In this document: positions 4,451-60,959 of the stretch, in pieces | Layout of the letters: the number at the start of each line of letters is the position of its first letter | Numbering within the stretch: the first letter of the stretch is position 1 | DNA from: Malacoraja senta | Taxonomy: Eukaryota | Direction: 5' to 3' | DNA: 64,000 nt | Assembly (NCBI GenBank): GCA_038087875.1 | Contig: JAXLNO010004283.1 | Coordinates: forward strand, 1 to 64,000 | Notes under the pieces: generated by a model | Told to the model about the DNA's origin: nothing | The model's input: the letters and a program-made list of their open reading frames with translations, nothing else | Databases searched by the model: none | Program-made: the position numbers and the translations under genes

Positions 4451-4875
4451 TTCCAGAATTGGTTACAGCGCAACGCAAGCCCACCCGTGTACCAGTAGTA
4501 CTGACCCAGCCCCCACACCGGGTATAAAACCCCCACTACCCCGGGAACACAGGACAGTACAGCACAACAGCCCTTCGGCCCACACTATCTGTGCCGACCA
4601 TGCTGCCAAGCTCACCTATCTGCCTGCGCATCACCCAACCCCTCTCTTTAATGCCACTGTCGTATCTGTGTCGCCCACCATCCCATCAATTATTAGGAAT
4701 AACACAAACCCCTTCTCGGGAATAACCTCAATCCCCCCCCCCCCCGGAAGTACCCTCCACTTACCCTTACGGGATATAATCCCCCCTAAACACACACACC
4801 GTAACAAACCCCAGCCCCCCCCTCTCTCACACCCCTCCCCACCCCCACCGCTTAAGGCTGGGCGCGGTTCCTACC

Positions 4876-4922
4876 TCAGGCTGTATCAGAGGAGTTTGAT
4901 GAATGTTCCCCTCGCTCCCAGG
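4876..4922 (-). CDS. UAA: MHC class I exon 7 (cytoplasmic [15 protein letters not shown]-stop)
   Basis: TTCCCTTCGCAG acceptor, Ser-rich tail, TGA at 4876-4878 followed 1 nt later by a donor (G|GTAGGA), implying a separate 3'UTR exon that I did not map. Confidence 0.82.
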
Positions 4923-7900
4923 CTGCGAAGGGAAGGAGCGGCTTTACACGTCAGCTGGCATCGCAGTGGGTGCAGTGAGACGCGGACTGCCGAACGAGCG
5001 CACACGCGAGCACGGGGACATGCACAGAGGTACGAGGACTCGCACGGACACGGGGACGGTTGTGGGGACGCGGGCAGACTGCCACATGGCAGAAACATGC
5101 GCTGATCCGCACAGGGACACATGGACACGCGCACACGGACGCGCGCAGGGTGCACACGGACGCGCGCAGGGACACACGGACGCGCGTAGAGCGCACACGG
5201 ACCCACACACGGACCCAACACATGGACGCATGAGGAGCGCACACGGACGCGCGCAAGGACGCGCGTCGAGCGCACACCGACCCGCGTAGAGCGCACACGG
5301 ACCCGCACAGGGACGCGCGCAGAGCGCACACGGACGCGCGTAGAGCGCACACGGATTCGCACAGGGACGCGCATAGAGCGCACACGGACGCAGCTTGGTT
5401 CCCTCCACCAGACACATTAACAATTTGCAACAAGGATCGAACTGTGAATTGAGGCGAACTTACATAGGGTGGGATTGTAGCCGCTGGTCCCCGCTGTAAA
5501 ACACAGAGACAGTTGGTGACTGACGAGGCCCCGCATCAGCTTGGTCTAAACACACAGATTCTGCAGCTGCCCCGTGTGGAGAGGCGGGGGGGGGGGGGGT
5601 AGAGGAGGTGGTGGGGGGGGGTAGAGGAGGTGGTGGAGGGGGGGGGGGGGTAGAGAGACGGTGGGGGGTGCGGGTGGAGAGGCGGGGGAGTGGAGAGAGA
5701 CGGGGGGGGGGGGGGGGGGTGGAGCGGCGGGGTGGGGGGGTGGGAGAGACGGGGTGGGGGGTGGAAAGGCGGGGTGGGGGGTGGAGAGGCGGGGGGAGGG
5801 ACGAGAGGCTGAGGGGGCGGGTCGAGAGACGGGGGTCGTGGAGGTAGGTTGGGGTGGGGGGTGGGGGCGGGGGCCAGGGTTGGCTGCCCTGTCTCCGCCC
5901 ACAACTACCTTGTCTCTTCTTCCAGTAGAGGACTCCCCCCACGGCCACTGCCACCACCGCCACGACAACGAGCACGGCAATGAGCGGCACCTTGATGCTG
6001 GGCTTGCGGACTGTCCGAGATTCAGAGACAGACGGCGGGTGAGTTACAGAGAGCGGGTTCGCGGCTGCCCCTCCCCTACCCCCTATTATCTAACCCTCCC
6101 GTCTCACTCACCCCTCCCCTTCTCACTTCCTCCACTCTCCCTCCCCTGCCGCACCAACATCTCACCCCACCTCCCCTCTCAGCCGCCCATCCCCTCACCT
6201 GTCCCTCCTCTCTTCACTCCCCTTCTCACCCTCCACTCACCTATCACTCCACTCTCACCTCCAACTCTCATCAACCCTTCCCTCACCCCTCCCATCTCCC
6301 TACCCTTCTCGACTCCCAGCCCGTGTCACCCCCCCTGGATGAGGGGCGATTTTATAGAAACATATATAATTATTAAAGGATTGGACAAGCTAGATGCAGG
6401 AAAAATGTTCCTAATGTTGGGCGAGTCCAGAACCAGGGGCCACAGTCTTAGAATAAAGGGGAGGTCATTAAGACTGAGGTGAGAAAAAACTTTTTCACCC
6501 AGAGAGTTGTGAATTTATGGAATTCCCTGCCACAGATGGCAGTGGAGGCCAAGTCACGGGATGGATTTAAGAGAGAGTTAGATAGAGCTCTAGTGGCTAG
6601 TGGAGTGAAGGGATATGGGGAGAAGGCAGGCACGGGTTATTGATAGGGGACGATCAGCCATGATCACAATGAATTGCGGTGCTGGCTCGAAGGGCCGAAT
6701 GGTCTCCTCCTGCACCTATTTTCTATGTTTCTATGTTTCTTCCCTCCAACCGCCCGCATCCCTCTCCCCTCCCCCTCACCCCAACCCACTTACCCAGGAC
6801 GACCTCGAGGGTCTCGGACAGCCCCGGGTGCTCCACACGGCAGGAGAGCGGGGTCCGGTCCCCAGGCTCCACGTCGACCCAGCGGCGCTGCTGGTAGGTG
6901 CCGTCGTGGTTGGGCAGCGTCCCGTGGGAGCGGCTCTCATCCAGGACCAAGCCGTCCCGCACCAGGTTCACCTCGATGGAGCGCGGGTAGAAGCCCGTGG
7001 TGAAACACGACACGCGGCGGCCATCGGCCGACAGGAAGATGCTCACCTCGGGCTGAACTGTGGGGAGAGTGACAGTGAGGGGGGGGGGGGACAGTGAGGG
7101 GGAGGACAAAATACAATGGGGGGGGGGACGGCGAGAGTGGAGGGTGCGGGAGCCAGAGAGGGAGAGGGGGGAAGGGACAACGAGGGCAGACAGAGGAAGG
7201 GGGAGATACAGCGGGGGGACAGAGTGAATGATACAGAGGGGAGAAACAGACAGAGGGGGAGACACGATAAGATGTGGGACAGAGGGAGGCGGGGATGAGA
7301 AAGTGCGGGGAGACAGGGAGAGGGGGAAGGGAGAGGGTGGGGAGACAGACAGAGGAGGGGGAGAGGCGGACAATGGGGGAGACAGTGAGGGGGAGACAAA
7401 GGTCGGGGGAGAGAGAGGGAGACACATAGTGGGGGGAGACAGGCGGGGGAGAACAAACAGAGGGGAGAGAGTGAGGGGGAGACAGAGGGGGGACGGATAG
7501 GGTGTGAGACAGAGGGGGAAACATGGGGGTTGAAACAGTGGGGAGAGACGGAGGTGGTAGACAGAAGGGGGTAGAGAGAATGATGCGATTGAGGGGGGAG
7601 TGATGGAGGGGGAGAGAGAAAGGGGAGGGAGAGAGAGGGGGACGGATAGAGAAAGGGGAGGAGAGAGATGGAGGAGAGCGGTAGGGGCTGGTGGAGGGAA
7701 GGGGGAGAAAGGAGGGGAGAGACAGACAGGGGGAGAGACACACAGAGGGAGGGCAGACGGAAGGGGGGATACAGACAAGCAGGGGGGCGGGAGAGAGGGG
7801 GAGAGACAGGCAGGGGGGGTAGAGACAGGGGGAAGACAGAGGTAGACAGTGTGAGATGGGTGACAGAGAGAGGATGGTGTAGAGGGGGGGGATAGGGGGG

Positions 7901-10900
7901 GCAAAGGGGGGGGCAGAGAGAAGGTGCCACACGTGGAACTGCTAAGGAAGATGAGACCCAAAGGGCAGACACTAGCATGGATAGCAGGTTGGCTGGATGG
8001 CAGAAGGCAATGAGAGGCAATAAAGGGGCCTTTTTCTGGCTGGCTGCCAGTGACAAGTGGAGTTCCGCAAGGGTCGGTGCTGGGGCCGCTACTCTTCACG
8101 TTGTATATTAATGACTTGGATGAGGGGATTGGGGGAGGACGAGTGTGAGTGTGGGGGGGGGCGCTGAGAGGGAGAGAAAAGGTAAGAGACAGAGAGAGGG
8201 AGGAGAGACAGAGAGGGAGGGGAGACAGAGAGGGAGCGGGGAAAGAGTGGGGAGACGGAGAGAGTGGGGGACACAGAGGGGGGGGGTGCACAGAGGGGTT
8301 GACACACAACGGGGGCAGAGAGGAGGGGGGGAACACAGACCGGGGTGGGGTATTGAAGGGGGGCGGCAGGGGAGATACAGAATGGGAGGCAGAGAAGGTG
8401 GGGAAAAGAAGGGGGCAGAGAAGGAGGAAGCGAAAGGGGGGGGGCAGAGAATGGCGACAGAGAAGGAGAACACGAGAAGGGGACACGGAGTAGGATGAAC
8501 ACAGAGTAGGGGGACATGGAGGAGGGGGCACAGAGGGGGGTAGATGGGGCAGAGAGCGCGGGGGGGACACAGATGGGGGGATCACGCAGAGGGGCACAGA
8601 GGAGGGGGAGCACAGTGAGGGCGGGGACTGAGAGGGGGAACACAGAGGGTGGGTGGCGGGGCACAGAGATGGGGGGGGGGGGGGAAGCAACAGCACTGAC
8701 CCACTCACCGGGGCTGAGTTGACTCTGTCCGGCCTGGACATATTTCCGCAGCCACTCGATGCACGTCTCCTCCAGGTAGGCTTTGTCCTGTTGGAGCCCC
8801 CCTTGTCCGTTCCCACTTGTATTTGGTGATTAACCCCCAGGTGACGGGCGTCACCCACACCATGTGGTCCTTGTCGTAGCTGATGAAGTCCTCTCCGTCC
8901 CAGCCGAACTGGTAAAATCCGGCGGTGGAGCCGTCCGAGCGCAGCTCACACCCGCACATCATCTGGGCAGTGTGGATCCCTGCAACACACGGCCAGCAGT
9001 GGAGGGGCTTTCCGCATCACCACCCCCCCCCCCAACATACATACACACAGACGCGTGGGTCTCTCCCCCCCCCACACACACATACATACACACAGACGCG
9101 TGGTCTCTCCCCCCCCCACACACACACACACACACACACGTGGTCAACCCCACCTTCCCAACCCCAACATCACAAATTCGACCCCAAACCACAGTACGCG
9201 CCCCCCCCTCCCCCCTCCCCCCTCCCCCCTCCCCCCTTCCCCCTCCCGCCCAACGCACTCACCCACGGTCCGGTTGGTCCGCTTCTGCAGGATCTGGACG
9301 TTGGCCTTGATTACCGGCTCCCAGCCCCGCCGTTTCTGTGTCTCCCGCTCCCAGTATTCGGGGCCCTGACTCTCCGCCATCCACCGCTGCCGCGGCACCT
9401 TTACCCGGGTCACGCTGTCGTAGTAATCAATCTGCTCCTCGTCCACGTATCCCACCGCCGTGAACTCAGGGACCCCCAGCCCGGGGTCACCCCCGTGTAG
9501 AGGTAACGGAGCGAGTGGGAGCCTGGAACCGGGCGGGGAGTCAAACAGTGCGAGAGACACCCCAACCCCACCTTCCACACACCCCCACCCCACACACTCC
9601 CTCCACCCTCAAGGCATCCCGCCCCCATCCCAACCCGCACCTGAGAGAGACACGTACCCGCACCCACTCCTAACCCTCCCCGTCTCGCCCCCGCCCACCC
9701 CCGTCCCGGGGACACACGTACCCTCACCCACACCACCCCCTCCTCCCGAGGCACCCTGCCTCAGACCCTCCCCCACATCACAAATTCGACCCCAAAACCC
9801 CAGAAACAGTAGGGTGGGGAGGAAGGGGGGGGGCAGAGACAGACAGCGCAGGGTGTGGGCGGAGAGACGGGGACTATCGTTGACGAGGGGGGTGGTAGAC
9901 ATGGATCATCAATGGATGGAGGGAGGGGGGGGGGAGGATAAGAGAGGCACCGACCGGTAGTGGAGGGGAGGACTCGAGTAGGGGACAAGGCTATGTATGA
10001 AACATCATTGGCAAGTCAGATTAAAGAAAATGCCAAGCCATTTCATGCGTAGATTAAAAAGAATAGGGTGATCAAGGAGAAGGTCGGACAGGGCAAGGAT
10101 AAAGGAGGGCGAGGTACTAAGCGAGCACTTTGCATCTGTTTTCACCATGGAGAAGGACATGGAGGACAGCAGGCTCAGCGTGGGGAATATTAGTTTGCTG
10201 AGGCAGTCTGAGACCAAGGAGTAGGTGGTGTATCGTGTACGGGTTCTTGAAGCGCATGAACATGGATATCTCACCAGGGTCTGATGGCATCTAACCACGG
10301 TGTTTGGCTTTGACAAAAAAGAAGATTGCAACCGCCTTGATGAAGAAACTTGAATCTTCTCAATCTGCAGACAAGGCCAATGTTTTCCTTTGTTTGAGAA
10401 ATTAAGTAGAGAGGGTGGTGGCAGTGTGGCTCAGCTGTAGAGCTACTGCCTGACAGCGCAAGAGACTCGAGTTCGATCCTGATTACGGGTGCTGTCTGTA
10501 CGGAGTTTGTACATTCTCCTCGTGAACTGCATGGGTTATATCTGAGATCTTCGGTTTTCTCCAAAGGTGTACAGGTTTATAGATTAATTGGCCTGGTGCA
10601 AAAATGTAAAATTGTCTCAAGTGTGTATAGGATAGTGTTAATGTGCGGGGAATGTTGGGCGGTGCGACTTCGGTGGGCCGAAGGGCCTGTTTACGCGCCG
10701 TATCTATAAACTAATCTAAAAAAAGCGAAAGTAGAGATAATCTGGGGAATTAGAGGGTTCGTGGGGTTCAAATCCAATCTCCTTGAAAGTGGTAACACAA
10801 GTACACAGAGTGGTAAAGGCGGCACATGGTATGATTGCGTTCATCGGTCAAGGCATTGAGTACAAGAGTCAGGAAGTCATGTTGCAGCTTCATACCACAT

Positions 10901-13900
10901 TGATTAGGCTGCATTTGGAGTATTGCGTGCAGTTCTGGACATCCCATTAAAGGAAGGATGTGGAGGCTTTGAAGAGGGTGCTGAAACTGTTTACTTTAAT
11001 ACTGCCTGGATTAGAGGGTATTAACTATACGGAGAGTTTGGACAAACTAGGATTGTTGGGGTTGAGGGGAGACCTGATAGAGGTATATACATTTTGAGAG
11101 GCGTATAAAGGGTAGACAGTTTGAACCTTTATCCAGGGTCGAAATGTCAAAGGCGAGAGGGCATACATTTAAGGTGAGAGGGGCAAAAATGTAAAGGAGA
11201 TGTGCCTGCTATTATTTCCACAGAGATGGTGTCGGTGGTGGAGGCCAATAATGCAGTGTGTATAAAAGGCTTGTGAATGGGCACATTGATATGTGGGAAA
11301 TGGATCACGTGCTGGCATGAGTTATTAGTCTAACTTGATATCTGTGGACCAAAGGGCCTTTTTCTGTGCCGGACTTTTGTACGTCGCATGGTACACCACT
11401 TGTTACAGACCTTCAGTCTGAAATACCTCATGCCACCACCACCCTATATTGCCTACCGACAAGCCAACATTGTACCCATGAGGGGAATATCCAGGCTAGG
11501 AGAATCAAGAACCAGAGAGCATAGGTTTAAGATGAGAGGGGGCAAGATTGAATAGGAACTTGAGGGGCAACGTTTTCATTCAATGGGTGATGGGTGTTTT
11601 GAACGAGCTGCCAGAGGCCTGATAAAACCTGTCCTCACCCTCAACAACTTTCACTTCTCTCACTTTCTTCTAGTTAAAGGTGTAGCCAAGCACTCGCATG
11701 GACCCCATCAATTTAATTAACTTTACCACTAACCCACCCTACACTCAAATTCACCTGGACTATCTCTGATGCCGCTCTCCCCTTTTTTGATCTCTCTTGT
11801 CTCTAACACAGGGGACAGATTATCGACTAACATCTATTACAGATATTTTAATGCCACTGTTATCTGGATACACCTCCTCCCACTCTGGCTTTTGCAAAGA
11901 CGCTAATCCTCTGCCGAATTCAATGTCTCTGCCACATCTGCTCCCAAGATGAGACTTTCCATTCTCGGACATTCGAAATGTCCACTTTCTTTAGTAAATG
12001 TGTTTCCCCCTGCTGCCTCAGGTGGATCCCTCAGCCACGTCTCCTCTGTGTCCAATAGATATGCTTTCCACCTTCCAGAGACTGCTCCCTCTGCAATCCC
12101 TTGGTTCACTCATCCCTTCCCACACAAACCACCCCTTCCCCAGGTACCTTCCCCTGCAACGGTAGCAGATGCAACACCTGTCCCTATACCTCCGTTCTCA
12201 CCTCCATCCAGGGCACCAGCTGTCCTTCTGGGTGAGACAGTGTTTCATATGCACCTCCACCAACCTCATCTACTGCAAACGCTGTTCCCGATGTGGCCTC
12301 CTGTACATCAGCGAGACCAAGCGTAGACTCACCGATTGTTTCGCCAAACACTTGGGCTCGGTCTGTCAAGGCCTACGGGATCTCCCGGTTGCTAAACACT
12401 AAACTCCTATTCCCATTCCTACACTGATATTTCTGTTTAAGCCTCCTCCACTGCCAGAGCGAGGCTACATGAAAAGTGGAAGAACAGCACAAACATTGAA
12501 TTCTCACATTTTAGGTAACTAGTTCACCAATCCCCTCCCCCTTCTTTGCCCCTCCCCAGTGCCCCACCTAGGTGCATGGATAGGAAAGATATATAGGGAT
12601 TGCCAGGGCAAATGAGACTAGAGTAAATGGGGCATCTTGGTAGGCATGGACAAGTTGGGCAAAGGGCCTGTTTCCGTGCTATATGATTCTGTGACCTAAT
12701 CTACATTCCGCAGAATTCTAAATACTCTATAAGGTCTCCACCTCAGTCCCCCATGCTTGAGAAAAACAGCCCCAGCCTTTCCTTACAACACAAGCACTCT
12801 ATTCCTGTTGATAACCGCATGAATCTTTCTTGCATCTTTTCCAGCTTAATGACATTCTTCCTGTAGCTGGGTGACCAGAACTGCGCACAGTATTGGCAGT
12901 GCAGTCTCACCAACATCTTGTCGAGCTGTAACATGATGTCTCAACTCCTGTACTTAATGTCATGACGGATGAAGGTAAGAGTGCAATTTACCAACTTTGC
13001 CACATTGTCTCCCTGATTTGCTATTTTTAAGGAACTATTTGCCTGTACCCCATCTATTCTACAAAACTCTCCAGGGCCCTACAATTACTGTGTAAGTCTG
13101 AGGGTGACATCAATCAGAGGGTGGTGAATCTATGGAATTGGAGCCCAAGCCAATGGATATTTTATAAGATGGGGATTGAAAGGTTCTTGTAAGTACGGGT
13201 GTCAAGGGTTATGGGGAGAAGGCAGGAGAATGCGGTTGAGAGCGAAGATAGATCAACCATGATTGAACGGCAGAGACCTTTTGGGCCGAATGGCATAATT
13301 CTACTCATACATCTCATGAACGTATAAGTCCTACCCTATTTTTTTTTTTTACAAAATGTGACATAGATACATAGATACATAGAAAATAGGTGCAGGAGTA
13401 GGCCATTCGGCCCTTCGAGCCTGCACCGCCATTCAATATGATCATGGCTGATCATCCAACTCAGTATCCCGTACCTGCCTTCTCTCCATACCCCCTGATC
13501 CCTTTAGCCACAAGGGCCACATCTAACTCCCTCTTAAATATAGCCAATGAACTGGCCTCAACTACCCTCTGTGGCAGAGAGTTCCAGAGATTCACCACTC
13601 TCTGTGTGAAAAAGTTTTTCCTCATCTCGGTCTTAAAGGATTTCCCCCTTATCCTTAAGCTGTGACCCCTTGTCCTGGACTTTCCCAACATCGGGAACAA
13701 TCTTCCTGCATCTAGCCTGTCCAACCCCATAAGAATTTTGTACGTTTCTATAAGATCCCCTCTCAATCTCCTAAATTCTAGCGAGTATAAGCCAAGTCTA
13801 TCCAGTCTTTCTTCATATGAAAGTCCTGACATCCCAGGAATCAGTCTGGTGAACGTTCTCTGCACTCCCTCTATGGCTATAATATCCTCCCTCTATGGCT

Positions 13901-16900
13901 ATAATGTCCTCCCTCTATGGCTATAATGACACTCAGAGTTGCATCCATTTGCCATTCTTTGGCTCATTTCACCCGGTCACCAGACCGTGTTGTAATCACA
14001 GATGAATCTCTTGGCGTCCACTACACCACCAATGTGGGTTTTATCTGAAAACCTACTAACCATGTCAACAACAAACTGTGAATAGAAATGACAAACCACA
14101 ATGGAGCCAGCTCTGATCCTGCAGTGCGCTGACCCTGGACTCATGGGATCTAACCTTCCGGACCAGCCTACAATGTGGGACCTTGTCAAAGGCTAAAGGC
14201 CATGTCAACCACATCCTCCACCTTACCCACATAAATCATCTAGGTCGCCTAATCAAAACCTCAAAGCAAATTTATAAGATGGTTCCCACAGACAAAGCCA
14301 TGCTGATTGTCCCTAATCAGTCCTGGCCTTCACAAACACAGGTAGACCCTGCCTCTCAGAATCCCCTCCAGTGACTCCCCCACCCCCCCACCCCCCCCCC
14401 CCCAGCTAATGTCAGGCTCCCTAGCCTAACTTGTCCTTGCAGCTCTTCTTAAATAAAGGCACAACATTCACCACCCCCAGTCTCGGGTAGCTCACTCGCC
14501 CAGTGAATGCAAATAAGTCCGCCAGAGCCCCTACAATTCCTTCCCTAGCTTCCCACAATTTTAGTTTTTAGTTTTAGAGATATGCGCGGAAACATAGAAA
14601 ATGGGTGCAGGAGTAGGCCATTCGGCCCTTCAAGCCTGCACTGCCATTCAATATGATCATGGCTGATCATCCAACTAAGTATCCTGTACCTGCCTTCTCT
14701 CCATACCCCTTGATCCCTTTAGCCACAAGGGCCACATCTAACTCCCTCTTAAATATAGCCAATGAACTGGCCTCAACTACATTCTGTGGCAGAGAATTCC
14801 TCAGATTCACCACTATCTGTGCAAAAAATGTTTTTCTCATCTCAGTCCTAAAAGATTTCCCCTTTATCCTTAAACTGTGACCCCTTGTTCTGGACTACCC
14901 CAACATCGGGAACAATCTTCCTGCATCTAGCCTGTCCAACCCCTTTAGAACTTTGTACGTTTCTATAAGAGCCCCCCTCAATCTTCTAAATTCTAGCGAG
15001 TACAAGCCAATTCTATCCAGTCTTTCTTCATATGAAAGTCCTGACATCCCAGGAATCAGTCTGGTGAACCTTCTCTATGGCAAGAATGTCCTTCCACAGA
15101 TTAGGAGACCAAAACTGTACGCAATACTCCAGGTGTGGTCTCACCAAGACCCTGTACAACTGCAGTAGAACCTCCCTGCTCCTATACTCAAATCCTTTTG
15201 CTATGAAATAAGCCATTCGGCCTACCGACTCTGCACCGACCAGCGATACCCGCTCACTCACAAGACCCTACACACTAGGGACAATTTACATTTACACCAT
15301 GCCATTTAATCTACAAACCCATTTGACTTTGGGGTGTGGGAAGAAACCGAATATCTTGGAGAAAACCCACATGGTCACGGGGAGAACGTATAAACTCCGT
15401 ATAGGCAGCCAGGGCTGGATTTAGATGAAGAGAGGCCCAAAGCTGATCCACTTGTGAGGCCCCTCCCAATCCCCCACCCTCACGACTAGAGGAAGATGGT
15501 CCACCAGATTGACATCGATTTGCAGCCGAGCGTGACCAATGAGAAAAGGGGCTGGAAAGCTGCCCTTATTTATTTATTTATTGCGAGTGCTAGTGTCGAG
15601 TTATTGGCTTAAAACACTATTATTCTGAAATGGAGGGCAAGGAAAATTACTGAAGGATTGTTTAGAGACTACAGTGTGTTGTGACAGCATATGTAAGAAA
15701 GGCCTATGACAGTGTCAAAAATATTATACACCTTGCAGGCTCTCACTTAATTTTTTTTCTCTGTTGTCAGCCGGGCAACCTTGGCAGCTTTTTAAGTTGC
15801 CAAATAACAGTTTAGGTGGTCATTTAAAATGGCTTGCATGATGCGTGCGATAATGTGCTCAGACGAAGTGCGCAGTTACCAGTCGGAATTATGCTCAATG
15901 AAGCATTCACATATTATTTCTGCTTCAAGTAAAGTCACAAACTAAACATATTCACCAATCAAGACATGATATATACCACAATGACATACAGCAAAATTAT
16001 AATACACTATCTCAACTCTTTTTACACATTGCAATGAATGCAATTTCTATTATTTCTTTCCACTTCCAAACAAAAATGTGGTTGGATTATTCAGCGTATG
16101 ATGAACCTCGGTGAGACCAAGCACAGCTTGGCGATCGCTTCGCACAACACCTCCACTCAGTTCGCAATAACCAACCTGATCTCCCGGTGGTCAACACTTC
16201 AACTCCCCTTCCCATTCCGAATCTGACCTTTCTGTCCTGGGCCTCCTCCATGGCCAGAGTGAGGCCCACCGCATATTGCAGGAGCATTTTCTCCAACTTT
16301 TTTGTCTCCCAATGGGATCCCACCACTGGCCACATCTTCCCATCTCCTCCCCTGTTGGCTTTCCGCAGAGACCGGTCCCTCCGTAACTCCCTGGTCAATT
16401 CGTCCCTTCCAACCCAAACCACCCCCTCTCCTGGCACTTTCCCTTGCAACCGCAGGAAATGCTACACTTGTCGCTTTACCTCCCCCCTGGACTTCATTCA
16501 AGGACCCAAGCAGTCTTTCCAGGTGCGGCAGAGGTTCACCTGCGCCTCCTCCAACCTCATCTACTGCATCCACTGCTCTAGGTGTCAGCTGCTCTACATC
16601 GGTGAGACCAAGCGTAGGCTTTGCGATCGCTTCGCCCAACACCTCCGCTCGGTCCGCATTAACCAACCTGATCTCCCGGTGGCTCAGCACTTCAACTCCC
16701 CCTCCCATTCCGAATCCAACCTTTCTGTCCTGGGCCTCTTCCATGGCCAGAGTGAGTCCCACCGTAAATTGGAGGAGCAGTACCTCATATTTTGCTTGGA
16801 AAGTTTACACCCCAGCGGTATGGACATTAATATTCTTCAATTTCAGGTAATCCCTGCTTTATCCTCCCCTTCCCAGCTCTCCCTCAGCCCACTGTCTCCG

Positions 16901-19900
16901 CCTCTTCCTTTCCTCTTCCCGTCCCCCCTACCCTCACAGCAGTCTGAAGAAGGGTCTCGACCCGAAACGTCGCCTATTTCCTTCGCTCCATAGATGCTGC
17001 CTCACCCGCTGAGTTTCTCGAGCATTTTTCTTTACCCATTCACACAAGTTCTGTTATCCCACTTTCCTCACCCACTCCCTACACATTAGGGGCAATTTTA
17101 CAGAGACAAGTTAACCTACAAAGCCAATGCATCTTTGGGATGTGGGAGGAAACTAACACTTGCAGGGAGAATGTGCAAATTCAACGCAGACAGTGCCCGA
17201 GGACAGGATCGAACACAGATCTCTGGCGTGTGAGGCAGCAAGTCTACCAGCTGTGCCACTATATTTTGTTTTCCAACACACAAAAAATTATACGTTGATA
17301 ACTTTGGTTACTGAAAAAATGAAAATATCCATTTTCAGTTTTAAATCTCCAAGTGACGCTATGTCCCCCTTTACAGCTACTGTATGTTTTAATTAAGTTC
17401 AAGACTATGGGGCAGTACATTGGACATAAAGTTGCTGTCTAAAAGTGCCAGAGACCCGGAATTGATCCTGAATATTATCTGAATGGTGGCCGATTAGGAA
17501 AAGGGGAGATGCAACGAGACCTGGGTGTCATGGTACACCAGTCATTGAAAGTAGGCATGCAGGTGCAGCAGGCAGTGAAGAAAGCGAATGGTATGTTAGA
17601 ATTCATAGCAAAAGGATTTGAGTATAAGAGCAGGGAGGTTCTACTGCAGTTGAACAGGGTCTTGGTGAGACCACACCTGGAGTATTGCGTACAGTTTTGG
17701 TCTCTTAATCTGAGGAAAGACATTCTTGCCATAGAGGGAGTACAGAGAAGGTTCACCAGACTGATTCCTGGGATGTCAGGACTTTCATATGAAGAAAGAC
17801 TGGATAGACTCGGCTTGTACTCTCTCGAATTTAGAAGATTGAGGGGGGATCTTATAGAAACTTAGAAAATTGTTAAGGGGTTGGACAGGCTAGATGCAGG
17901 AAGATTATTCCCGATGTTGGGGAAGTCCAGAACAAGGGGTCACAGTTTAAGGATAAGGGGGAAGTCTTTTAGGACCGAGATGAGAAAATCATTTTTTACA
18001 CAGAGAGTGGTGAATCTGTGGAATTCTCTGCCACAGAAGGTAGATGAGGCCAGTTCATTGGCTATATTTAAGAGGGAGTTAGATGTGGCCCTTGTGCTAA
18101 AGGGATCAGAGGATATGGAGAGAAGGCAGGTACAGGATACTGAGTTGGATGATCAGCCATGATCATATTGAATGGTGGTGCAGGCTCGAAGGGCCGAATG
18201 GCCTATTCCTGTACCTATTTTCTAATATGGGTGCTGTCTGTATGGAGTTTGCTCCTTTTCCCTTTGATCGCATGGGTTTCCTCCTGGTGCTCTTGTTTCC
18301 TTCCACATTCCAAAGGTGTGCAGGAATCTATTTCAGACCCAACCCAAAGCGTAATATTTTCCTTTTGTTCAGAGATTCTGTCTGACCTGTTGAGTTCCTC
18401 CAGCTTTTTGTGTCTATCTTCAGTTTAAACCAGCATCTGCAGTTCATTCCTACACACACGATACTATACGATAGAACTTTATTAATCCTCGGAGGGAAAT
18501 TGTGTGTGTGTGTGTGTGTGGGTATATATATTATACACACACACACACGCACACATATATATATTTATTAGTTATATATTCATATATAAATATACACCGT
18601 TTTGTTTTCTCGTTTATAACATTGTTTACAGAGTACTATGTTTACATATTCTGTTGTGCTGCTGCAAGTAAGGATTTCATTGTTCTAACTGGGACGTGAG
18701 AGAATAAAACACTCTTGACTTACTCCGCTAATGTGTGGGATAGAACTAGAGTACGGGTGATCGGTGGTCGGCGTGGACTCGGTGGGCCGAAGGGCCTGTT
18801 TCCACGCTGTATCTTTAAATTAAACTAAAAACACTAAAACCAGAGGGAGTCTAAAGAAGGGTCTCTACCCGAAACGTCACCCAATTTCTTCTACCCAGAG
18901 TTGCTGGCTGCTCCATGGAGTTCCCCCACACAATTAAAACATGGAATAGTCTTCACCCTACCATAGTTACCCAACCAGACGCAACTAAATTTAAGGTACC
19001 TCTTTTTTCCCCCAAGAACCCTTTTTTGCTTAAGTCCAAGTCAAGAGTCAAGAGAGTTTTATTGTCATGTGTCCCAGATAGGACAATGAAATTCTTGCTT
19101 GCTGCAGCACAACAGAATATGTAAACATAATACAGAACAGGAGAAAAAAGTTCAGTGTGTTTATATACCATAGACCATATATATACACAATAAATAAACA
19201 GATAGAATTCAATAGGCTGTTATTGTTCAGCCCCCCACCACCTCCAGTTTAAATTCCATTTAGAATATTTATGGAGGACCAGGAAACCAGAAGTTACTCC
19301 AGGGAGTTACTCCAGATCCAGGGTCAGGGAGTGATTCTGCATTGGTTTTCAGCGGTCGCGGTGAGGCAGCAACCGGACAGCAACAGAGGCCAGATCTCCC
19401 ACAATTCAAAGCGGGGGAGAAAGTGCCCAGCGCTGACCAGTTGCCGTGGCAGTGCGCATGCGCAGGGCTGCCGATGATGTGCTGGCCATGGTTGTGAGCA
19501 TGTGCAGGGGGGGAGGATGTGCTGTAGCAGTGTGCATGTGCAAGGTGGCCTGCCGTGTCGGTGGATAAGGAGCGAGCGGAGAGCGGAGACCCAGCGGCCT
19601 GGATACGGATGGCAGGCGGAGACGGAGATTGACACAGAGAGAGAGAGAGATAGAGAGGGGGACCCGCCCAGAGTTGAACGGCAGGTGTCCTGCCTTGGCC
19701 GGAGGCCGCCTAGATTTCGAGGCTGTAGGCTTCAGCCGATGAAGCCTAGTGGTAAATCCGGCTCTGCGAGGCCCCCCTAGATCTCGAGGTCCTAAATTTA
19801 AGCTTGTCAAGCTTATAGGTAAATCCGGCACTGTTGGCAGCACCCGTAGTCAGGATCGAACCCGGGCCTCTGTAAGACAGTAAGCAGTCCTACCGCTGCG

Positions 19901-22900
19901 CCACCCTGCCGCCCAGTATACAAGGCTATATTTGAACCGGCCTCTAGGTAAAAATCAAAATGCTGGAGTAACTCAGAGGGTCAGGCATAATCACTGGAGA
20001 ATATGGATTGGTAACGTTTCAGGTCAAGGCCCTTCTTCAGACGCCATCGATAGAAACATAGAAACATAGAAAATAGGTGGAGGCCATTCGGCCATTCGAG
20101 CCGTTCATTGTGATCATGGCTGATCGTCCCCTATCAATAACCCGTGCCTGCCTTCTCCCCATATGTCTTGACTCCACTAGCCCCTAGAGCTCTATCTAAC
20201 TCTCTCTTAAATCCATCCAGTGATTTGGCCTCCAATGCCCTCTGTGGCAGGGAATTCCATAAATTCACAACTCTCTGGGTGAAAAGGTTTTTTCTCACCT
20301 CAGTCTTAAATGACCTCCCCTTTATTCTAAGACTGTGGCCCCTGGTTCTGGACATGCCCAACATTGGGAACATTTTTCCTGCATCTACCTTGTCCAGTCC
20401 TTTTATAATTTTATAAGTTTCTATAAGATACCCCCTCATCCTTCTAAACTCCAGTGAATACCATATAACCATATAACCATTACAGCACGGAAACAGGCCA
20501 TCTCGGCCCTTCAAGTCCGTGCCGAACATTAAAAAATTTTTTTTTAATAAATACTTCCCCCTAGTCCCATCTACCTGCACTCAGACCATAACCCTCCATT
20601 CCTTTCCCGTCCATATACCCATCCAATCTATTTTTAAAGGATAAAATCGAACCAGCCTCCACCACTTCGACTGGAAGCTCATTCCACACAGCTACCACTC
20701 TCTGAGTAAAGAAGTTCCCCCTAATGTTACCCCTAAACTTCTGTCCCTTAATTCTCAAGTCATGTCCCCTTGTTTGAATCTTCCCTACTCTCAATGGAAA
20801 AAGCTTATCCACGTCCACTCTGTCTAACCCGCTCATAATTTTAAAGACCTCTATCAAGTCCCCTCTTAACCTTCTGCGCACCAAAGAATAAAGACCTAAC
20901 TTGTTCAACCTTTCTCTGTAACTTAGTTGCTGAAACCCAGGCAACATTCTAGTAAATCTCCTCTGTACTCTCTCTATTTTGTTGACATCCTTCCTATAAT
21001 TAGGCGACCAAAATTGTACTCCATATTCCAGAATTGGCCTCACCAATGCCTTGTACAATTTTAACATTACATCCCAACTTCTATATTCAATGCTCTGATT
21101 TATAAAGGCCAGCACACCAAAAGCTTTCTTTACCACCCTATCTACATGAGATTCCACCTTCAGGGAACTGCACAGTTATTCCTAGATCCCTCTGTTCAAC
21201 TGCATTCCTCAATTCTCTACCATTTACCATGTACGTCCTATTTTGATTTGTCCTGCCGAGATGTAGTACCTCACATTTATCAGCATTAAACTCCATCTGC
21301 TATCTTTCAGCCCACTCATCCAAATGGCCTAAATCTCTCTGTAGACTTTGAAAATCTACTTCATTATCCCCCACACCACCTATCTTAGTATCATCTGCAT
21401 ACTTACTAATCCAATTTTCCACACCATCATCCAGATCATTGATGTACATGACAAACAACAGTGGACCCAACACAGACCCCTGAGGCACCCCACTAGTCAC
21501 CGGCCTCCAACCTGACAAACAGCCATCCACCATTACTCTCTGGCATCTCCCATTCAGCCACTGTTGAATCCATCTTGCTACTCCACCATTAATACCCAAC
21601 AATTGAATCTTCTTAACCAACCTTCCATGAGGAACCTTGTCAAAGGCCTTACTGAAGTCCATATAGACAACATCCACTGCTTTACCCTCATCAATTTCCC
21701 TAGTAACCTCTTCGAAAAATTCTAGAAGATTAGTCAAACATGACCTTCCAGGCACAAATCCGTTGACTGTTCCTAATCAGACCCTGCTTAACCAGATGCT
21801 TATATATATTATCTTTAAGTATCCTTTCCATTAATTTGCCCACCACTGACGTCAAACTAACAGGTCTATAATTGCTAGGTTTACTCTTAGAACCCTTTTT
21901 AAACAACGGAACAACATGCGCAGTACGCCAATCCTCTGGCACTATTCCCGTTTCTAATGACATTTGAAATATTTCTGTCATAGCCCCTGTTATTTCTACA
22001 CTAACTTCCCTCAATGTCCTCGGGAATAGCCTGTCAGGACCTGGAGACTTATCCATTTTCATATTTTTCAAAAGTGTCCGCACCTCCTCTTCATTGAATC
22101 TCAGAGTAGTTTCCATTGCTACTCTGCTTGTTTCCCTTACCTCACATAATTCCATATCCTTCTCCTTGGTAAATACCGAAGAAAAGAAATTGTTCAGTAT
22201 CTCCCCCATCTCTTTTGGCTCTGCAGATAGCTGTCCACTCTGACTCTCTAATGGACCAATTTTATTCCTTGTTATACTTTTGCTATTAATATAGCTGTAG
22301 AAACCCTTTGGATTTACTTTCACCTTACTTGCCAAAGCAACCTCATATCTTCTTTTAGCTTTTCTAATTTCTTTCTTAATATTCTTTTTACATTCTTTAT
22401 ACTCCTCAAGCACCTCATTTACTCCATGCTGCCTATAATTATTGTAGATCTCTCTCTTTTTCCGAACCAAGTGTCCAATTTCCCTTGAAAACCATGGCTC
22501 TGTCCAATTTTTACTATTTCCTTTCAACCGAACAGGTACATAAAGATTCTGTACTCTTAAAATTTCACCTTAAATGTCCTCCATTTCTCTTCTACATCCT
22601 TCCCATAAAAAACATGTCCCAATTCACTCCTTTTAAATCCTTTTGCATCTCCTCAAAGTTAGCCTTTCTCCAATCAAAAATCTCAACCCTAGGTCCAGTT
22701 CTGACCCTCTCCATAATTATATTGAAACTAATGGTATTGTGATCACTGGACCCGAAGTGCTCCCCAACGCTTACCTCCGCCTCCTGCCTGGTCTCATTTC
22801 CTAACAGGAGGTCCAGCACTGCCCCTTCTCTAGTAGGCACCTCTATGTATTGCTGCAAAAAACTATCCTGCACACATTTTACAAACTCCAAACCATCCAG

Positions 22901-25900
22901 CCCTTTTACAGAATGTGTTTCCCAGTCTATGTGTGGAAAATTGAAATCTCCCACAATCACTACCTTGTGCTTACTACTAATATCTGCTATCTCCTTACAT
23001 ATTTGCTCTTCCAATTCTCGCTCCCCATTTGGCGGTCCATAATACACCCCTAAAAGTGTTGCTACACCTTTCCCATTTCTCAGCTCCACCCAAATAGCCT
23101 CCCTAGACGAGCCCTCTAATCTATCCTGCCAAAGCACTGCTGTAATATCTTCCTTGACAAGCAATGCAACACCCCCACCTCTTGCCCCTCCAATTCTATC
23201 ACGCCTGAAGCAACGAAATCCTGGAATATTTAGTTTCCAATCACAGCCCTCCTGCAACCATGTTTCACTGATCGCCACAACATCATACTTCCAGGTGTCA
23301 ATCCAGACTCTAAGCTCATCCACCTTTCTTACAATGCTCCTAGCATTAAAATATACACATTTAAGAAACCCACCACCACTTATTCTCTGTTTATTATCTT
23401 TTTCTTCTTTCTCCCCTACATTTTGGGTCCGAGTGCTTCCCTTCTCTGCCTCCTGCCTCCCACATTTTCTACCATCTTTCTCTATTTGAGTCCCTCCCCC
23501 CAACCGTTCTAGTTTAAAGTCTCCCCAGTAGCCTTTGCAAATCTCCCCGCCAGGATATTGGTTCCCCTCGGGTTCAAGTGCAACCCGTCCTTTCTGTACA
23601 GGTCACACCTTCCCCAAAAGAGGTCCCAATGATCCAGAAATTTGAATCCCTGCTCGCTGCACCAGTTCCTCAGCCACGCATTTATCCTCCACCTCATTTC
23701 ATTCCTGCTCTCACTGTCGCGTGGCACAGGTAGTAATCCTGAGATTGTTACCTTTGCGGACGTTCTCACTAACTCTCATCCCAACTCCCTAAATTCTCCT
23801 TTCAGGACCTCTTCTCTTTTTCTGCCTATGTCATTGGTACCTATATGTACCACAACCTCAGGCTCCTCTCCCTCCGATTTCAGGATCTCTTGGACACGTT
23901 CAGACACATCCCGGACCCTGGCACCAGGGAGGGACACTACCATCCGGGTCTCCTGACTGTGTCCACAGAATCGCCTATCCGACCCCCTAACCATAGAGTC
24001 CCCTATTACTATTGCCCTCCTCTTCTTTTCCCTACCCTTCTGAGTAATAGGGCCGGTCTCTGTGCCGGAGGCCCGGCCGCTGTCGCTACCCCCAGAAAGG
24101 CTGTCCCCCGCAACAGTACTCAAACAGGAGTACTTATTTTCTAGGTGTACAGCCACTGGGGTACTCACTAGTCCGTGCCTCTGCCTCTTGCCCTTCCTAA
24201 CCGTGACCCACTTGTCTGCCTCCCGTGGTCTTGGAGTGGCCACCTCCCTGTAACTCCTTTCTATGACCTCCTCACTCTCCCTGATCAGACAGAGGTCATC
24301 GAGCTGTTGCTCCAGGTTCCTAACACGGTCCCTTAGGAACCCCATCTCTACGCACCTGACACAGATGTGGACGTCTGGAGGGGTATCAGACTCCATGACC
24401 TCCCACATCTGACATCCAGAACAGTAAACTGCCCTGGCCCTCATTCTCCCCCCTCCCCTGGATACAATACAAAGCCTTACCCTGGATACAATACAAAGCC
24501 TTACCCTAGATACAATACAAAGCCTTACCCTGGATACAATACAAAGCCTTACCCTGGATACAATACAAAGCCTTACCCTGGATACAAATACAAGCCTAAT
24601 CTTTTCAATCTTTCCTCATATGGCAGTCCCGCCATCCCAGGGATCAATCTCGTGAACGTACGCTGCACTGTCTCAATCACAAGGATGTCCTTCCTCAAAT
24701 TAGGAGACCAAAACTGCACACAATACTCCAGATGTGGTCTCACCGGAGCCCTATACAACTGCAGAAGAACCTCTTTACTCCTATACTGAAATCCTCTTGT
24801 TATGAAGGCCAACATTCCATTAGCTTTCTTCACTGCCTGCTGTACCTGCACGCCAACTTTCAGTGACCGGTGTACAAGGACACCCAGGTCTCGCTGTACC
24901 TGCCCCTTACCTAACCTAACCCCATTGAGATAATAATCTGGCCCCTTGTTTTTGCCGCCAAAGTGGATAACCTCACATTTATCTATATTATACTGTATCT
25001 GCCACGCATCTGCTCATTCACTCAACCTGTCCAGGTCACCCTGCAACCTCCTAACATCCTCTTCACAGTTCACACTGCCACCCAGCTTTGTGTCATCCGC
25101 AAACTTGCTAGTGTTGCTCCTAATTCCCTCTTCCAAATCATTAAGATATATGGTAAACAGTTGTGGCCCCAACACCGAGCCTTGCTGCACTCCACTCGCC
25201 ACTGCCTGCCATTCTGAAAAAGGACCCGTTCACTCCTACTCTTTGCTTCCGGTCTGCCAACCAATTTTCTATCCATGTCAACACCCTACCCCCAATACCA
25301 TGTGCTCTAATTTTAGTCACCAGTCTCCCGTGCGGGACCTTATCAAAGGCTTTCTGAAAGTCTAGATACACTACATCCACTGGCACCCCTTCATCCATTT
25401 TACTTGTCACATCCTCAAAAAATTACAGAAGATTAGTCAAGCATGATTTCCCCTTCATAAATCCATGTTGACTTGGACTAATCCTTTTACTGCTATCCAA
25501 ATGCCCCATTATTACCTCTTTAATAATTGACTCCAGCATCTTTCCCACCACCGAAGTCAGGCTAACTGGTGACTATTTTAGTTGAGATCATTCTTCAGAC
25601 TCTCCAGAAATGCGGTCTGACCTGTCGAGTTACTCCTGCACTTTGTCCTGTTGTATCATAACCAACCAGCATCGACAGTTCTTTGTTACTACTACTTAAT
25701 ATGCCGTAAGACCAGCTCTTTTATAATGTGGATTCATTCCACGACATGGCTGTTCATATCCTGTAATTGGCTTCTATGAACTTCTGTACAGTAAATACAG
25801 TTGCAACCTCACCTACTTGTAAAAACTCTCAGGATACTTATCTGCAACATCTCCCATATCCCTTCTTTATTCTGATCTCCCCCTTGATTTGTGTATCAGG

Positions 25901-26643
25901 GAATATTTTGATGTGCCCGCCTAACATTGATCCTCGCCCACTGATTTATGAATCCTGTGCCCAGCCCGACACCGACCCCCCTCATCCCCTGATCCCAAAG
26001 TTGCCCAGCTGATCGCTGACATAATGCACTGACTATGGCCAGCCCGCCACTGACCACCACCCACTGTCTGGGGCTGTTACTCTGTGTCCAGCCTAACACT
26101 GAATCCATGCGCACTGTCCGGGTTGACGGTGCCCTGATCAACACTGACCCTCACCCACTGACACTGACTGGGGGCTGTTGACCCTGTGGCCAGGCCAACA
26201 CTGACCCTCACCCACTGACACTGACTGGTGGCTGTTGACCCTGTGGCCAGGCCAACACTGACCCTCACCCACTGACACTGACTGGTGGCTGTTGACCCTG
26301 TGGCCAGGCCAACACTGACCCTCACCCACTGACACTGACTGGGGGCTGTTGACCCCTGGCCAGCCCAACACAGACACCTCACCCACTGATACTGACTGGT
26401 GGCTGTTGACCCTGTGGCCAGCCCAACACTGATCCTCACCCACTGATACTGACTGGTGGCTGTTGACCCTGTGGCCAGCCCAACACTGACCCTCACCCAC
26501 TGATACTGACTGGTGGCTGTTGACCCAACACACAGACACCTCACCCACTGACCGGGACTGGGTGTCCAGCCCGACACTGACCCTCACCCACCTGCGCACT
26601 CCCCTCCACACAGGAGGGCCGCCAGCAGTAGCAGACGTAGCAT
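4876..26643 (-). CDS. UAA: MHC class I heavy (alpha) chain, classical UAA-like; 7 coding exons; frameshifted as assembled (assembly error or pseudogene)
   Basis: Exons 26592-26643, 9263-9522, 8709-8979, 6794-7057, 5909-6010, 5464-5493 and 4876-4922 all have AG/GT boundaries and phase-1 junctions. They translate to leader, alpha1 (GSHSLRY...), alpha2 (CGC...TCIEWL), alpha3 Ig-C1 (SCFTTGFYP...SCRVEH), TM and cytoplasmic tail. The symbol is inferred from conserved anchor residues. Confidence 0.93.
5115..5390. repeat. CpG-rich degenerate minisatellite in the MHC intron between the cytoplasmic exons
   Basis: Repeated GCGCACACGGAC(G/C)CGCG(C/T)AG motifs. Confidence 0.85.
5464..5493 (-). CDS. UAA: MHC class I exon 6 (cytoplasmic, [10 protein letters not shown])
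   Basis: 30-nt phase 1-1 exon, TTTTACAG acceptor, T|GTAAGT donor; contains the conserved class I tail tyrosine (GYNP). Confidence 0.85.
5909..6010 (-). CDS. UAA: MHC class I exon 5 (connecting peptide and transmembrane)
   Basis: [34 protein letters not shown]; 102 nt, GGACAG acceptor, G|GTAGTT donor. Confidence 0.92.
6335..6740 (+). mobile_element. CR1-type LINE 3' fragment in the MHC alpha3-TM intron
   Basis: [23 protein letters not shown]...RGHSLRIKG; ends in (TTCTATGT)n tail. Confidence 0.9.
6794..7057 (-). CDS. UAA: MHC class I exon 4 (alpha3 Ig C1 domain), intact
   Basis: [30 protein letters not shown]...PNHDGTYQ...[18 protein letters not shown]; 264 nt, CCACAG acceptor, G|GTAAGT donor. 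Confidence 0.96.
7060..8700. repeat. Purine-rich low-complexity intron (G/A on + strand) with an embedded CR1 RT fragment (~7918-8130)
   Basis: Long GGGGGAGA/GACAGA runs; embedded AAGGTGCCACAC...GGGTCGGTGCTGGGGCCGCTACTCTTCACG (KVPH...GSVLGPLLF). Confidence 0.85.
8709..8979 (-). CDS. UAA: MHC class I exon 3 (alpha2 domain), frameshift at ~8797-8810
   Basis: [37 protein letters not shown]...ITKYKWER, then frame change to [29 protein letters not shown]. Acceptor TTGCAG, donor G|GTGAGT; 271 nt. Confidence 0.95.
9263..9522 (-). CDS. UAA: MHC class I exon 2 (alpha1 domain), 1-nt deletion at ~9483-9486
   Basis: [14 protein letters not shown], then frame change to [23 protein letters not shown]...PEYWERETQ...LQKRTNRTV. 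Acceptor TTCCAG, donor G|GTGAGT; 260 nt where a multiple of 3 is required. Confidence 0.95.
10420..10720 (+). mobile_element. HE1/V-type tRNA-derived SINE (other copies at ~15210-15410 -, ~17040-17260 -, ~27250-27400 +, ~55190-55320 +)
   Basis: A box TGGCTCAGCTG, B box GAGTTCGATCC, V-domain GCTGTCTGTACGGAGTTTGTACATTCTCC, CR1-like 3' end. Confidence 0.8.
10750..11385 (+). mobile_element. Old degenerate CR1 3' fragment (paralogous to 41420-42040)
   Basis: Degenerate [11 protein letters not shown] and RGHTFKVRG motifs with many indels. Confidence 0.75.
11480..12500 (+). mobile_element. Degenerate Penelope-like element (with a short CR1 piece at its 5' end)
   Basis: [29 protein letters not shown] (GIY-YIG endonuclease) plus RT remnants. 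Confidence 0.7.
13365..13880 (-). mobile_element. CR1 LINE 3' fragment
   Basis: ORF 13461-13865: [20 protein letters not shown]...[14 protein letters not shown]; (ATAGATAC)n tail. Confidence 0.92.
14590..15210 (-). mobile_element. CR1 LINE 3' fragment
   Basis: [16 protein letters not shown] motif and the same 3'UTR as the 13.4 kb copy. Confidence 0.9.
16090..17030 (+). mobile_element. Penelope-like element 3' part (GIY-YIG) with hammerhead-bearing terminal repeat
   Basis: [34 protein letters not shown]...HFNS; internal partial duplication; CTGAAGAAGGGTCTCGACCCGAAACGTC at 16944-16971. Confidence 0.88.
17478..18225 (+). mobile_element. CR1 LINE 3' fragment
   Basis: [14 protein letters not shown]...[12 protein letters not shown]...[14 protein letters not shown]. 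Confidence 0.92.
19300..19833. mobile_element. Putative non-autonomous DNA transposon remnant (second copy 32496-33030)
   Basis: Two diverged ~530-bp copies in the window, both with GTGCGCATG(C/T)GCA arrays; ends GGTAAATCCGGCACTG, a terminal-inverted-repeat-like end with no partner seen. Confidence 0.55.
20050..20460 (-). mobile_element. CR1 LINE 3' fragment
   Basis: [17 protein letters not shown]...NLWNSLPQ; (ATAGAAAC)n tail. Confidence 0.9.
20461..24444 (-). mobile_element. Near-full-length CR1-clade LINE (family with (TATGGT)n tail): ORF1 zinc-finger/esterase plus ORF2 EN-RT, disrupted
   Basis: ORF1 [16 protein letters not shown]...[10 protein letters not shown]...VVHIGTNDI...GLHLN (SGNH esterase); EN YFNARSI...SETWL...VGDFNFP...SSDHN; RT AFDKVPH...PQGSVLGP...YADD; several frameshifts. 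Confidence 0.95.
24458..24595. repeat. 24-bp tandem repeat (5 copies plus partial) at a CR1/CR1 junction
   Basis: CCTGGATACAATACAAAGCCTTAC x5 (one copy CCTAGA...), grading into TACAAGCCT of the adjacent CR1. Confidence 0.9.
24590..25570 (-). mobile_element. CR1 LINE RT fragment
   Basis: [16 protein letters not shown]...[11 protein letters not shown]...FADDTKL. Confidence 0.92.
26040..26590. repeat. Minisatellite, ~57-bp unit, ~8 copies, at the start of MHC intron 1
   Basis: Repeated ACACTGACCCTCACCCACTGA(C/T)ACTGACTGGTGGCTGTTGACCCTGTGGCCAG. Confidence 0.9.
26592..26643 (-). CDS. UAA: MHC class I exon 1 (signal peptide [17 protein letters not shown])
   Basis: ATG at 26643 in context CTACCATG, hydrophobic leader, donor CAG|GTGGGT in phase 1 that joins GC of alpha1 to give G-SHSLRY; class I-type promoter directly upstream. 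Confidence 0.85.
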
Positions 26644-26842
26644 GGTAGATAGACAGACCCCCGACTGTCCAAGTTGTTGCAAGTTTGCGAGTCCTGGGAC
26701 CGAGCGCGGTTCACTTCCAGTCGGCGGCGCAGTGCCCGCGGCCAATCACAGTACGGCCCGCCGGTGAGTCACCGGTATCCGGGCAGAAGAGCCGAAAGAT
26801 TTATGTCGCTCGAAATGACAGACCGAAAATATCCCAGTGTGT

Positions 26843-26885
26843 CCAATCAGCAGCGGAGCTGCGTTCGCGTCACCGGTTGTCGGGG
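26843..26885 (-). promoter_or_regulatory. MHC X1-X2-Y promoter module
   Basis: Sense strand CCCCGACAACCGG (X1-like), TGACGCG (X2/CRE, 26866-26872), 18 nt, then ATTGG within CTGATTGG (Y box, 26843-26850), ~200-240 bp upstream of the leader ATG. Second ATTGG at 26742-26746; AP-1-like TGAGTCA at 26765-26771. Confidence 0.75.
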
Positions 26886-58422: not shown

Positions 58423-58526
58423 AGCCCTCTTGTTTCCATAGTTATTTTTATATATGAGAGGCGTCCCTCTGTAATGTACATACCTCCCTCATGTTTGGCA
58501 GGACCGTTCTATTTGCTAGTATCTGT

Positions 58527-60796: not shown

Positions 60797-60959
60797 GATC
60801 TTCCCAAGCTTTCCTCTCCATTGGCCATCATGAGCAGGCGTGGACACAGACCAGGCATTAAATCACCCTGAAAATCAACAAACTCCATCAAGACTTGGAT
60901 GTTGCTGGAAAGAAAAGACTCAAAGTCTTGCTGGAGGCACTCAGCGGGTCAGGCAGTAT

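Follow-up and report, generated by a model that had tools for sequence, protein, structure and literature searches.

The window analyzed here is a stretch of 64,000 nucleotides (nt) from the skate Malacoraja senta (contig JAXLNO010004283.1, positions 1 to 64,000 of the forward strand). Its interval 4876-26643 is a real seven-exon gene for a class I heavy chain of the major histocompatibility complex (MHC) of a skate (family Rajidae). No further class I gene is present in the whole window. The gene lies on the minus strand and comprises 1026 nt of coding sequence, which are distributed over the following exons:

26643-26592, minus strand: exon 1, leader, 17 codons plus 1 nt, followed by a GT donor
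9522-9263, minus strand: exon 2, alpha1, 260 nt and therefore 1 short of a multiple of three
8979-8709, minus strand: exon 3, alpha2, 271 nt here versus 273 nt in all relatives
7057-6794, minus strand: exon 4, alpha3 C1-set domain, intact
6010-5909, minus strand: exon 5, connecting peptide, transmembrane segment and KKRQ, intact
5493-5464, minus strand: exon 6, cytoplasmic, with the tail tyrosine in SGYNPT
4922-4876, minus strand: exon 7, coding part, with the TGA stop at 4878-4876

All seven exons were found to be bounded by AG acceptors and GT donors and to be joined in phase 1. Three in-frame alpha1/alpha2 pieces were matched by Pfam MHC_I (PF00129; E 7e-15, 4e-14 and 3e-6) and the alpha3 piece by Pfam C1-set (PF07654; E 6e-10), and among solved structures 6LUP, a class I molecule of nurse shark, matched each of the three domains best. 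The translations were aligned to 6LUP and to chains of the human leukocyte antigen (HLA) type. In the in-frame pieces the anchor residues Y7, Y59, R84, T143, K146, W147, Y159, W167 and Y171 (HLA numbering) are present, and so are, in the translated pieces, the sequon NRT, the two pairs of cysteines and the tail tyrosine. In alpha3 a leucine (EVNL) stands in place of the usual tryptophan of the immunoglobulin fold; it was considered as a defect and rejected, because 6LUP has leucine too.

The exon plan was compared with transcripts of related animals. Transcript contig L001 of a relative skate (run SRR13269367), which encodes protein P0002, aligns to exactly seven blocks that coincide with the seven predicted exons. 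Its positions 86-139 match the leader block 26644-26591 with 91% identity and continue directly into alpha1 (96.6%, one gap), and the remaining blocks correspond to alpha2 (94.2%), alpha3 (93.2%), the transmembrane exon (85%), exon 6 (100%) and the coding part of exon 7 (100% over 48 nt). Because of this alignment the leader, located 17,069 nt upstream of alpha1, was accepted as the true first exon of the lineage, and a leader matching exon 1 is found in the proteins P0002, P0143 and P0145. In addition, X13 contigs, which derive from another organism, behave as RNA with the spliced joints 8709>7057, 5909>5493 and 5467>4922, by which three exon junctions were confirmed (alpha3 upstream, exon 5 downstream and exon 7). 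Full-length messenger RNA (mRNA) contigs of lineage L2, to which the gene belongs (see below), were obtained in at least six RNA runs of a relative, and a transcript is also present in X13. An earlier interpretation made from the letters of this DNA without database searches (here called the sequence-only reading) had proposed seven exons with canonical phase-1 junctions, a 17-kb first intron and retention of the anchor residues, the NRT glycan site, both disulfides and the tail tyrosine; on all of these points it was confirmed.

In the assembly the reading frame is interrupted, with alpha1 being 1 nt and alpha2 2 nt short. Compared with every ortholog, three 1-nt deletions were detected within 680 nt of G-rich DNA, while no insertion and no other lesion was found; the proper frames are free of stops and the splice sites are all intact. 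The breaks lie at the following positions:

9477-9473, minus strand: alpha1 frame break, G5 versus G6 (TGG GGG, Trp-Gly) or TAT GGG in orthologs
8797..8806, minus strand: alpha2 frame break, an A missing at ~8806 and a C missing between 8798 and 8797, net -2

The alpha1 break was compared with six complementary DNAs (cDNAs) and three genomic relatives, and the alpha2 breaks with six cDNAs and two genomic orthologs. Both bases missing from alpha2 are present in all six cDNAs and in the genomic little skate locus L003. Between the two alpha2 sites, three or four codons are consequently read out of frame, and the apparent G6 in alpha2 results from the missing C between 8798 and 8797. An in-frame 11-codon alpha2 allele with one spurious G was considered instead and judged less likely, as a loop of 12 codons is common to both skate lineages, L1 and L2, and nurse shark. 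Of what had been proposed for the frame, the premature TGA at 9410 was recovered, with the stop ending at this position. The alpha1 loss had been placed in a C run, which proved wrong: no ortholog differs from the window in CCCC at 9486-9483, and the lesion lies in the G run at 9477-9473. For alpha2 the proposed loss of frame was found in the assembly, but its assignment to a G run has to be replaced by two separate missing bases, A and C, to which the G6 is secondary.

The window gene is the positional (syntenic) ortholog of Leucoraja erinacea (little skate) XP_055487160. Collinearity was observed with two little skate loci, L003 (JAMYXN010000067.1, the gene of XP_055487160, P0143) and L002 (JAMYXN010000534.1), and it extends to flanking non-coding DNA: the stretches at 42.6-41.4 kb and at 4.45-3.75 kb are collinear with both loci and 88-93% identical to them; the neutral divergence between window and little skate amounts to ~10%. 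The ortholog is thus already annotated in Leucoraja erinacea, under the name 'H-2 class I histocompatibility antigen, Q9 alpha chain-like' (XP_055487160.1), and together with the transcripts P0002 and P0144-P0150 it shares with the window gene the locus, the leader, the seven-exon plan, the tail and the promoter, at 93-94% protein identity in alpha1 and 90% in alpha2. Whereas the Leucoraja gene is in frame and has an intron 1 of ~2.5-3.5 kb, the window gene carries the three 1-nt deletions and a 17-kb intron 1. The two also differ in alpha3, which in the window is closer to that of Rostroraja; protein matches of the window alpha3 reach 92-93% with class I of Rostroraja eglanteria and 87-89% with Leucoraja erinacea and Amblyraja radiata. 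The copy at L002 (14899-15178) combines an L2 alpha1 with an alpha2 that is divergent, at 86% identity to the window, and has a 1-nt insertion GACAAGGGAGC; its annotation reads LOW QUALITY PROTEIN. Recombination, a broken allele or a further error of assembly could each account for this copy.

Conservation extends upstream of the gene. About 190 nt upstream of the ATG (26700..26890, minus strand), from an X1-like promoter box to the ATG, are near-identical to the little skate ortholog L002, and upstream of the X1-like box the similarity ends abruptly. From the promoter alignment with L002 four elements were read, the last resembling an interferon-stimulated response element (ISRE):

26884-26866, minus strand: X1/X2-like block
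26850-26841, minus strand: Y/CCAAT box
26749-26740, minus strand: second ATTGG
26718-26708, minus strand: ISRE-like GGAAGTGAA

Judged by these motifs, 26700..26890 is a putative SXY-like proximal promoter that has been conserved.

To place the gene among class I lineages, a maximum-likelihood tree of 58 sequences, assembled without labelled UBA or UDA references, was used. The window gene and the little skate L2 sequences group at 100/100. This L2 group has as its sister, at 100/100, another skate lineage, L1 (Rostroraja AGH32767, Amblyraja XP_032903661/2 and Leucoraja XP_055486554), and both fall within a batoid clade at 100/99 that also holds class Ia-type genes of rays. The base of the tree is a polytomy of the batoid clade, the UAA of Triakis and nurse shark, and three further shark-dominated clades, one of them with two Pristis sequences. 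By its position in the tree, L2 is a skate-specific duplicate of a batoid UAA-type gene and probably not an old class Ib lineage. The UBA class Ib family of sharks was described as derived from UAA (PMC12562908), and L2 fits this kind of UAA derivative. L1 and L2 were also considered as alleles of one locus, which was rejected because L004 and L003 have flanks that do not match each other. With respect to the comparison with non-classical lineages proposed earlier, the gene does lie in the UAA-type clade of batoids; it does so as a member of the sister lineage L2 and in a tree whose base is the polytomy described.

Members of L1 (Rostroraja eglanteria AGH32767.1 = P0001, Amblyraja radiata XP_032903661/2 and Leucoraja XP_055486554) have the same anchors as the window gene and an alpha3 that is 88-92% identical to it, but their leader and tail are unlike those of the window and their alpha1 is just 66-72% identical. 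The nurse shark molecule Gici-UAA (PDB 6LUP) has EVNL in alpha3 and a 12-residue alpha2 loop as in the window; it is ~55% identical and belongs to a separate shark clade. The two skate lineages differ strongly in how they evolve between genera. For L2, identities between genera are 93% in alpha1, 90% in alpha2 and 89% in alpha3, versus 70-74%, 79-82% and 89-95% for L1. Judged by these identities, L1 behaves as a classical lineage and L2 as a conserved one.

In the alpha3 domain itself a different relationship was noticed. The window alpha3 is nearer to that of Rostroraja L1 (P0001, 92%) than to the Leucoraja L2 orthologs (89%), and in Leucoraja and Amblyraja L1 and L2 carry the same alpha3 variants. 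From the shared variants, this looks like homogenization of alpha3 between L1 and L2 within species.

Variation within the lineage was analyzed in orthologous L2 sequences of the little-skate type (nine proteins and six cDNAs from two accession series of the Sequence Read Archive). Among the nine proteins, 6 of 178 residues are variable (mature positions 4, 16, 18, 19, 47 and 163). The variable sites in the six cDNAs are 9 synonymous versus 1 non-synonymous in alpha2 and 6 synonymous versus 5 non-synonymous in alpha1. High polymorphism of the alpha1/alpha2 groove was therefore not found in the little-skate-type set.

These data bear on the proposal that the window contains a functional, polymorphic, classical (UAA) peptide-presenting locus that is hidden by sequencing errors alone. 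Such a locus would agree with the presence of all residues for the peptide termini, of the glycan site and of the disulfides, with the placement in the batoid UAA-type clade, with the conserved SXY-like promoter and with the full-length mRNA made by relatives. It is nevertheless improbable, as alpha1 and alpha2 are nearly invariant in the nine little-skate-type sequences, with the single non-synonymous change in alpha2, and as L2 is far more conserved between genera than L1, whose fast alpha1/alpha2 divergence befits a classical locus. The genomic surroundings may also speak against it. In cartilaginous fish a classical class Ia gene is expected to be closely linked to TAP1/2 and PSMB8/9, in the class Ia region (PMC10751288). 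No TAP, PSMB or other gene was recognized in the 64 kb of the window, where TAP and PSMB were looked for among the large open reading frames (ORFs), which small exons would escape, and a short-chain dehydrogenase is the sole neighbor seen in little skate. The sequence-only reading had called the locus classical on the grounds that the residue set marks classical class I. Its UAA-type affinity and the full set of anchors stand, while the nearly invariant groove of a skate-specific sister lineage speaks against the label, which, as far as the sequence comparisons go, probably does not apply if polymorphism is meant by it. L1 and L2 both have the anchors yet differ sharply in the rate at which the groove evolves, and conserved anchor residues alone are insufficient to call a locus classical. 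Peptide presentation by the L2 molecule is very likely, judged by its retained residues. L2 would accordingly not be a polymorphic classical locus; we propose that it encodes an oligomorphic, beta2-microglobulin-associated, peptide-presenting 'class Ia-like' molecule.

Altogether we favor, with a probability of roughly 0.5, the reading that the window holds a skate L2 class I gene with a conserved groove, in which the three deletions are slightly more likely assembly errors than real. It builds on what was observed of the gene's structure and orthology, on the placement of its lineage and the way this has been conserved, and on where the three bases are missing. The window gene would then probably be functional in the animal, with its frame broken by consensus errors of the assembly. 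The competing explanation is that the deletions are real and that the L2 gene of this haplotype is a null allele or pseudogene of very young age, from which no functional heavy chain would be made or whose mRNA would be lost by nonsense-mediated decay. We regard it as a serious possibility, if at somewhat below even odds. Apart from the disabling lesions, no relaxed constraint was found when stops, splice sites, residue changes and the promoter were checked, and the window-specific amino-acid changes (~7) are all conservative and do not exceed those on the Leucoraja branch. With no stops, intact splice sites and little amino-acid change, an inactivation, if real, must have happened very recently. 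In the neutral flanks of the L003 alignment one-base indels amount to ~0.3% per branch, which makes three independent deletions in a short time unlikely; by our estimate ~0.15-0.3 such 1-nt indel events are expected in the 1026-nt coding sequence since inactivation, versus 3 observed. A null allele would thus have acquired three independent 1-nt deletions yet no stop, no splice defect, no larger indel and no excess of amino-acid changes, and its promoter would have stayed conserved.

Read-derived contigs were also compared with the locus. Run X1 is the probable source-species read set, as it contains 45% of the sampled words of 4800-10700 versus at most 12% in other runs. At the alpha1 break, the G6 form (an extra C after plus-strand position 9472) accounts for 1459 of a depth of 1884 in five contigs of this run, and it is also present in a single X13 contig. 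In the intron adjoining alpha2, a contig of run X1 (8369-8653) shows 0 substitutions and is 2 nt longer than the window, which suggests local base loss in the assembly. Such an adjacent contig of the same haplotype, with two bases that are absent from the window and no substitutions, argues against a null allele. X35, from the same organism, covers nothing of the exons and X31 almost nothing of alpha1/alpha2, a coverage too low to interpret. No short database proteins that match the frameshifted alpha2 ORF were found, a result that is uninformative either way.

Several observations weigh against an intact gene with a conserved groove, and a number of them favor the null allele. The assembly carries all three lesions, and no recovered contig with the exon variants of the window itself contradicts them. 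The evidence from read contigs covers the alpha1 site only. Moreover, all exon contigs of run X1 differ from the window at 8918, 8907, 6864, 6895, 6950 and 6812, and because of these fixed differences they have to be seen as other copies or alleles; the G6 evidence consequently does not come from the haplotype of the window and is no proof that the latter is intact. The summed exon depth of run X1 is ~1000 versus ~36-58 in unique introns, i.e. 20-30 times higher, which suggests a multi-copy family of many similar members, among which dead ones are expected. The alpha2 deletions lie outside long homopolymers. No genome-wide indel-error signature of the assembly was seen in the two comparisons made: over 8.5 kb aligned with L003, one-base gaps number 29 in the window versus 23 in L003 and thus reveal no general deletion bias, and between two copies of a long interspersed nuclear element (LINE) from the window, 29 substitutions and 3 gaps were counted per 1048 nt, a normal indel-to-substitution ratio. 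The little skate copy L002, a haplotig or paralog, likewise has a 1-nt indel in alpha2 and the LOW QUALITY PROTEIN label, and as a divergent copy with an itself frameshifted alpha2 at the same little skate locus it is a caveat to the conservation of the groove. Finally, the polymorphism set consists of transcripts of a relative and not of the window species, from an uncertain number of individuals.

Weighing both sides, assembly consensus errors remain the somewhat favored origin of the three deletions, and a very young null allele is rated lower, though still as a substantial possibility. The long-read homopolymer errors proposed in the sequence-only reading are in line with breaks in G-rich DNA and with the dominance of G6 in run X1, but the alpha2 lesions are not simple errors of homopolymer length. 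Likewise, the comparison with reads that had been proposed for the alpha1 break did yield a dominant G6 in contigs of X1 and X13, only from other copies or alleles.

HLA-E and Qa-1 are conserved peptide-binding class Ib molecules with an oligomorphic groove in which the anchors are retained. L2 resembles them in its kept anchors, its conserved groove and its origin from a classical lineage; the likeness would be a functional analogy, with no homology beyond the class I fold. More tentatively than the reading favored above, L2 might thus be a conserved presenter of the HLA-E/Qa-1 kind that arose independently in Rajiformes beside a fast classical gene, the window copy being a working one hidden by assembly slips. 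With two sister lineages that share the anchors but differ in groove evolution, skates are a usable case for studying the origin of a conserved class I presenter from a classical gene. Should the breaks be artefacts, annotation of the skate genome would miss an expressed gene of antigen presentation or take it for a pseudogene, and other G-rich immune genes of the assembly may suffer likewise. The gene is of a known kind and has an annotated ortholog; wider interest is limited to the contrast between L1 and L2.

'MHC-Ia-like genes' were reported near the Ia gene of elasmobranchs, surrounded by zinc-finger genes (PMC10751288). In contrast to these, no zinc-finger motifs were found in the window, whose remaining large ORFs resemble, by their sequence, those of transposons or retroviruses. 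In flanks of 10 kb at L003, L004 and L010, a short-chain dehydrogenase gene was all that could be recognized, with no TAP, PSMB or zinc-finger neighbor. This dehydrogenase gene (adh_short) occupies L003:1-2275, upstream of the little skate ortholog, and is without a recognized counterpart in the window; by its family it may be an HSD17B8-like MHC-linked gene. Retrovirus-like ORFs lie between repeated ends at 55100-61300, with an integrase-like ORF at 57808-58422 and a gag-like ORF at 58527-59360.

Intron 1 (9523..26591, minus strand) measures 17,069 nt versus ~2.5-3.5 kb for the orthologous little skate intron, and is swollen by transposon insertions, including a LINE at ~20.4-24.5 kb. Anchors collinear with little skate are preserved within it at 25875-25568, 20053-19836, 15409-15205, 14957-14590 and 13658-13426. 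The LINE family is represented in the window by two copies, one at 20400-24600 (minus strand), which sits within this intron, and one at 45900-47760 (plus strand); they are 95-97% identical and contain pieces of endonuclease and reverse transcriptase ORFs. Directly after the donor of exon 1 a tandem array was observed (26080-26580, minus strand) that consists of ~8 copies of a unit of ~55-60 nt. The units contain GGTCAACAGCCACCAGTCAGT and GTGGGTGAGGGTCAGTGTTGG, and every copy has the donor-like motif GTGGGTGAG. A further motif, GGGGTCGAATTTGTGATGT (~19-28 nt), occurs in intron 1 a short way upstream of alpha1 (9793-9775) and in intron 2 (~9191-9163), with 2 exact copies in the window. The last two introns (regions 5000-5400 and 5580-5835) harbor a GC-rich 54-nt tandem repeat with CGCACACGGAC units as well as a G-rich repeat of 20-22 nt with G runs of up to ~17, at which read contigs break or vary in length.

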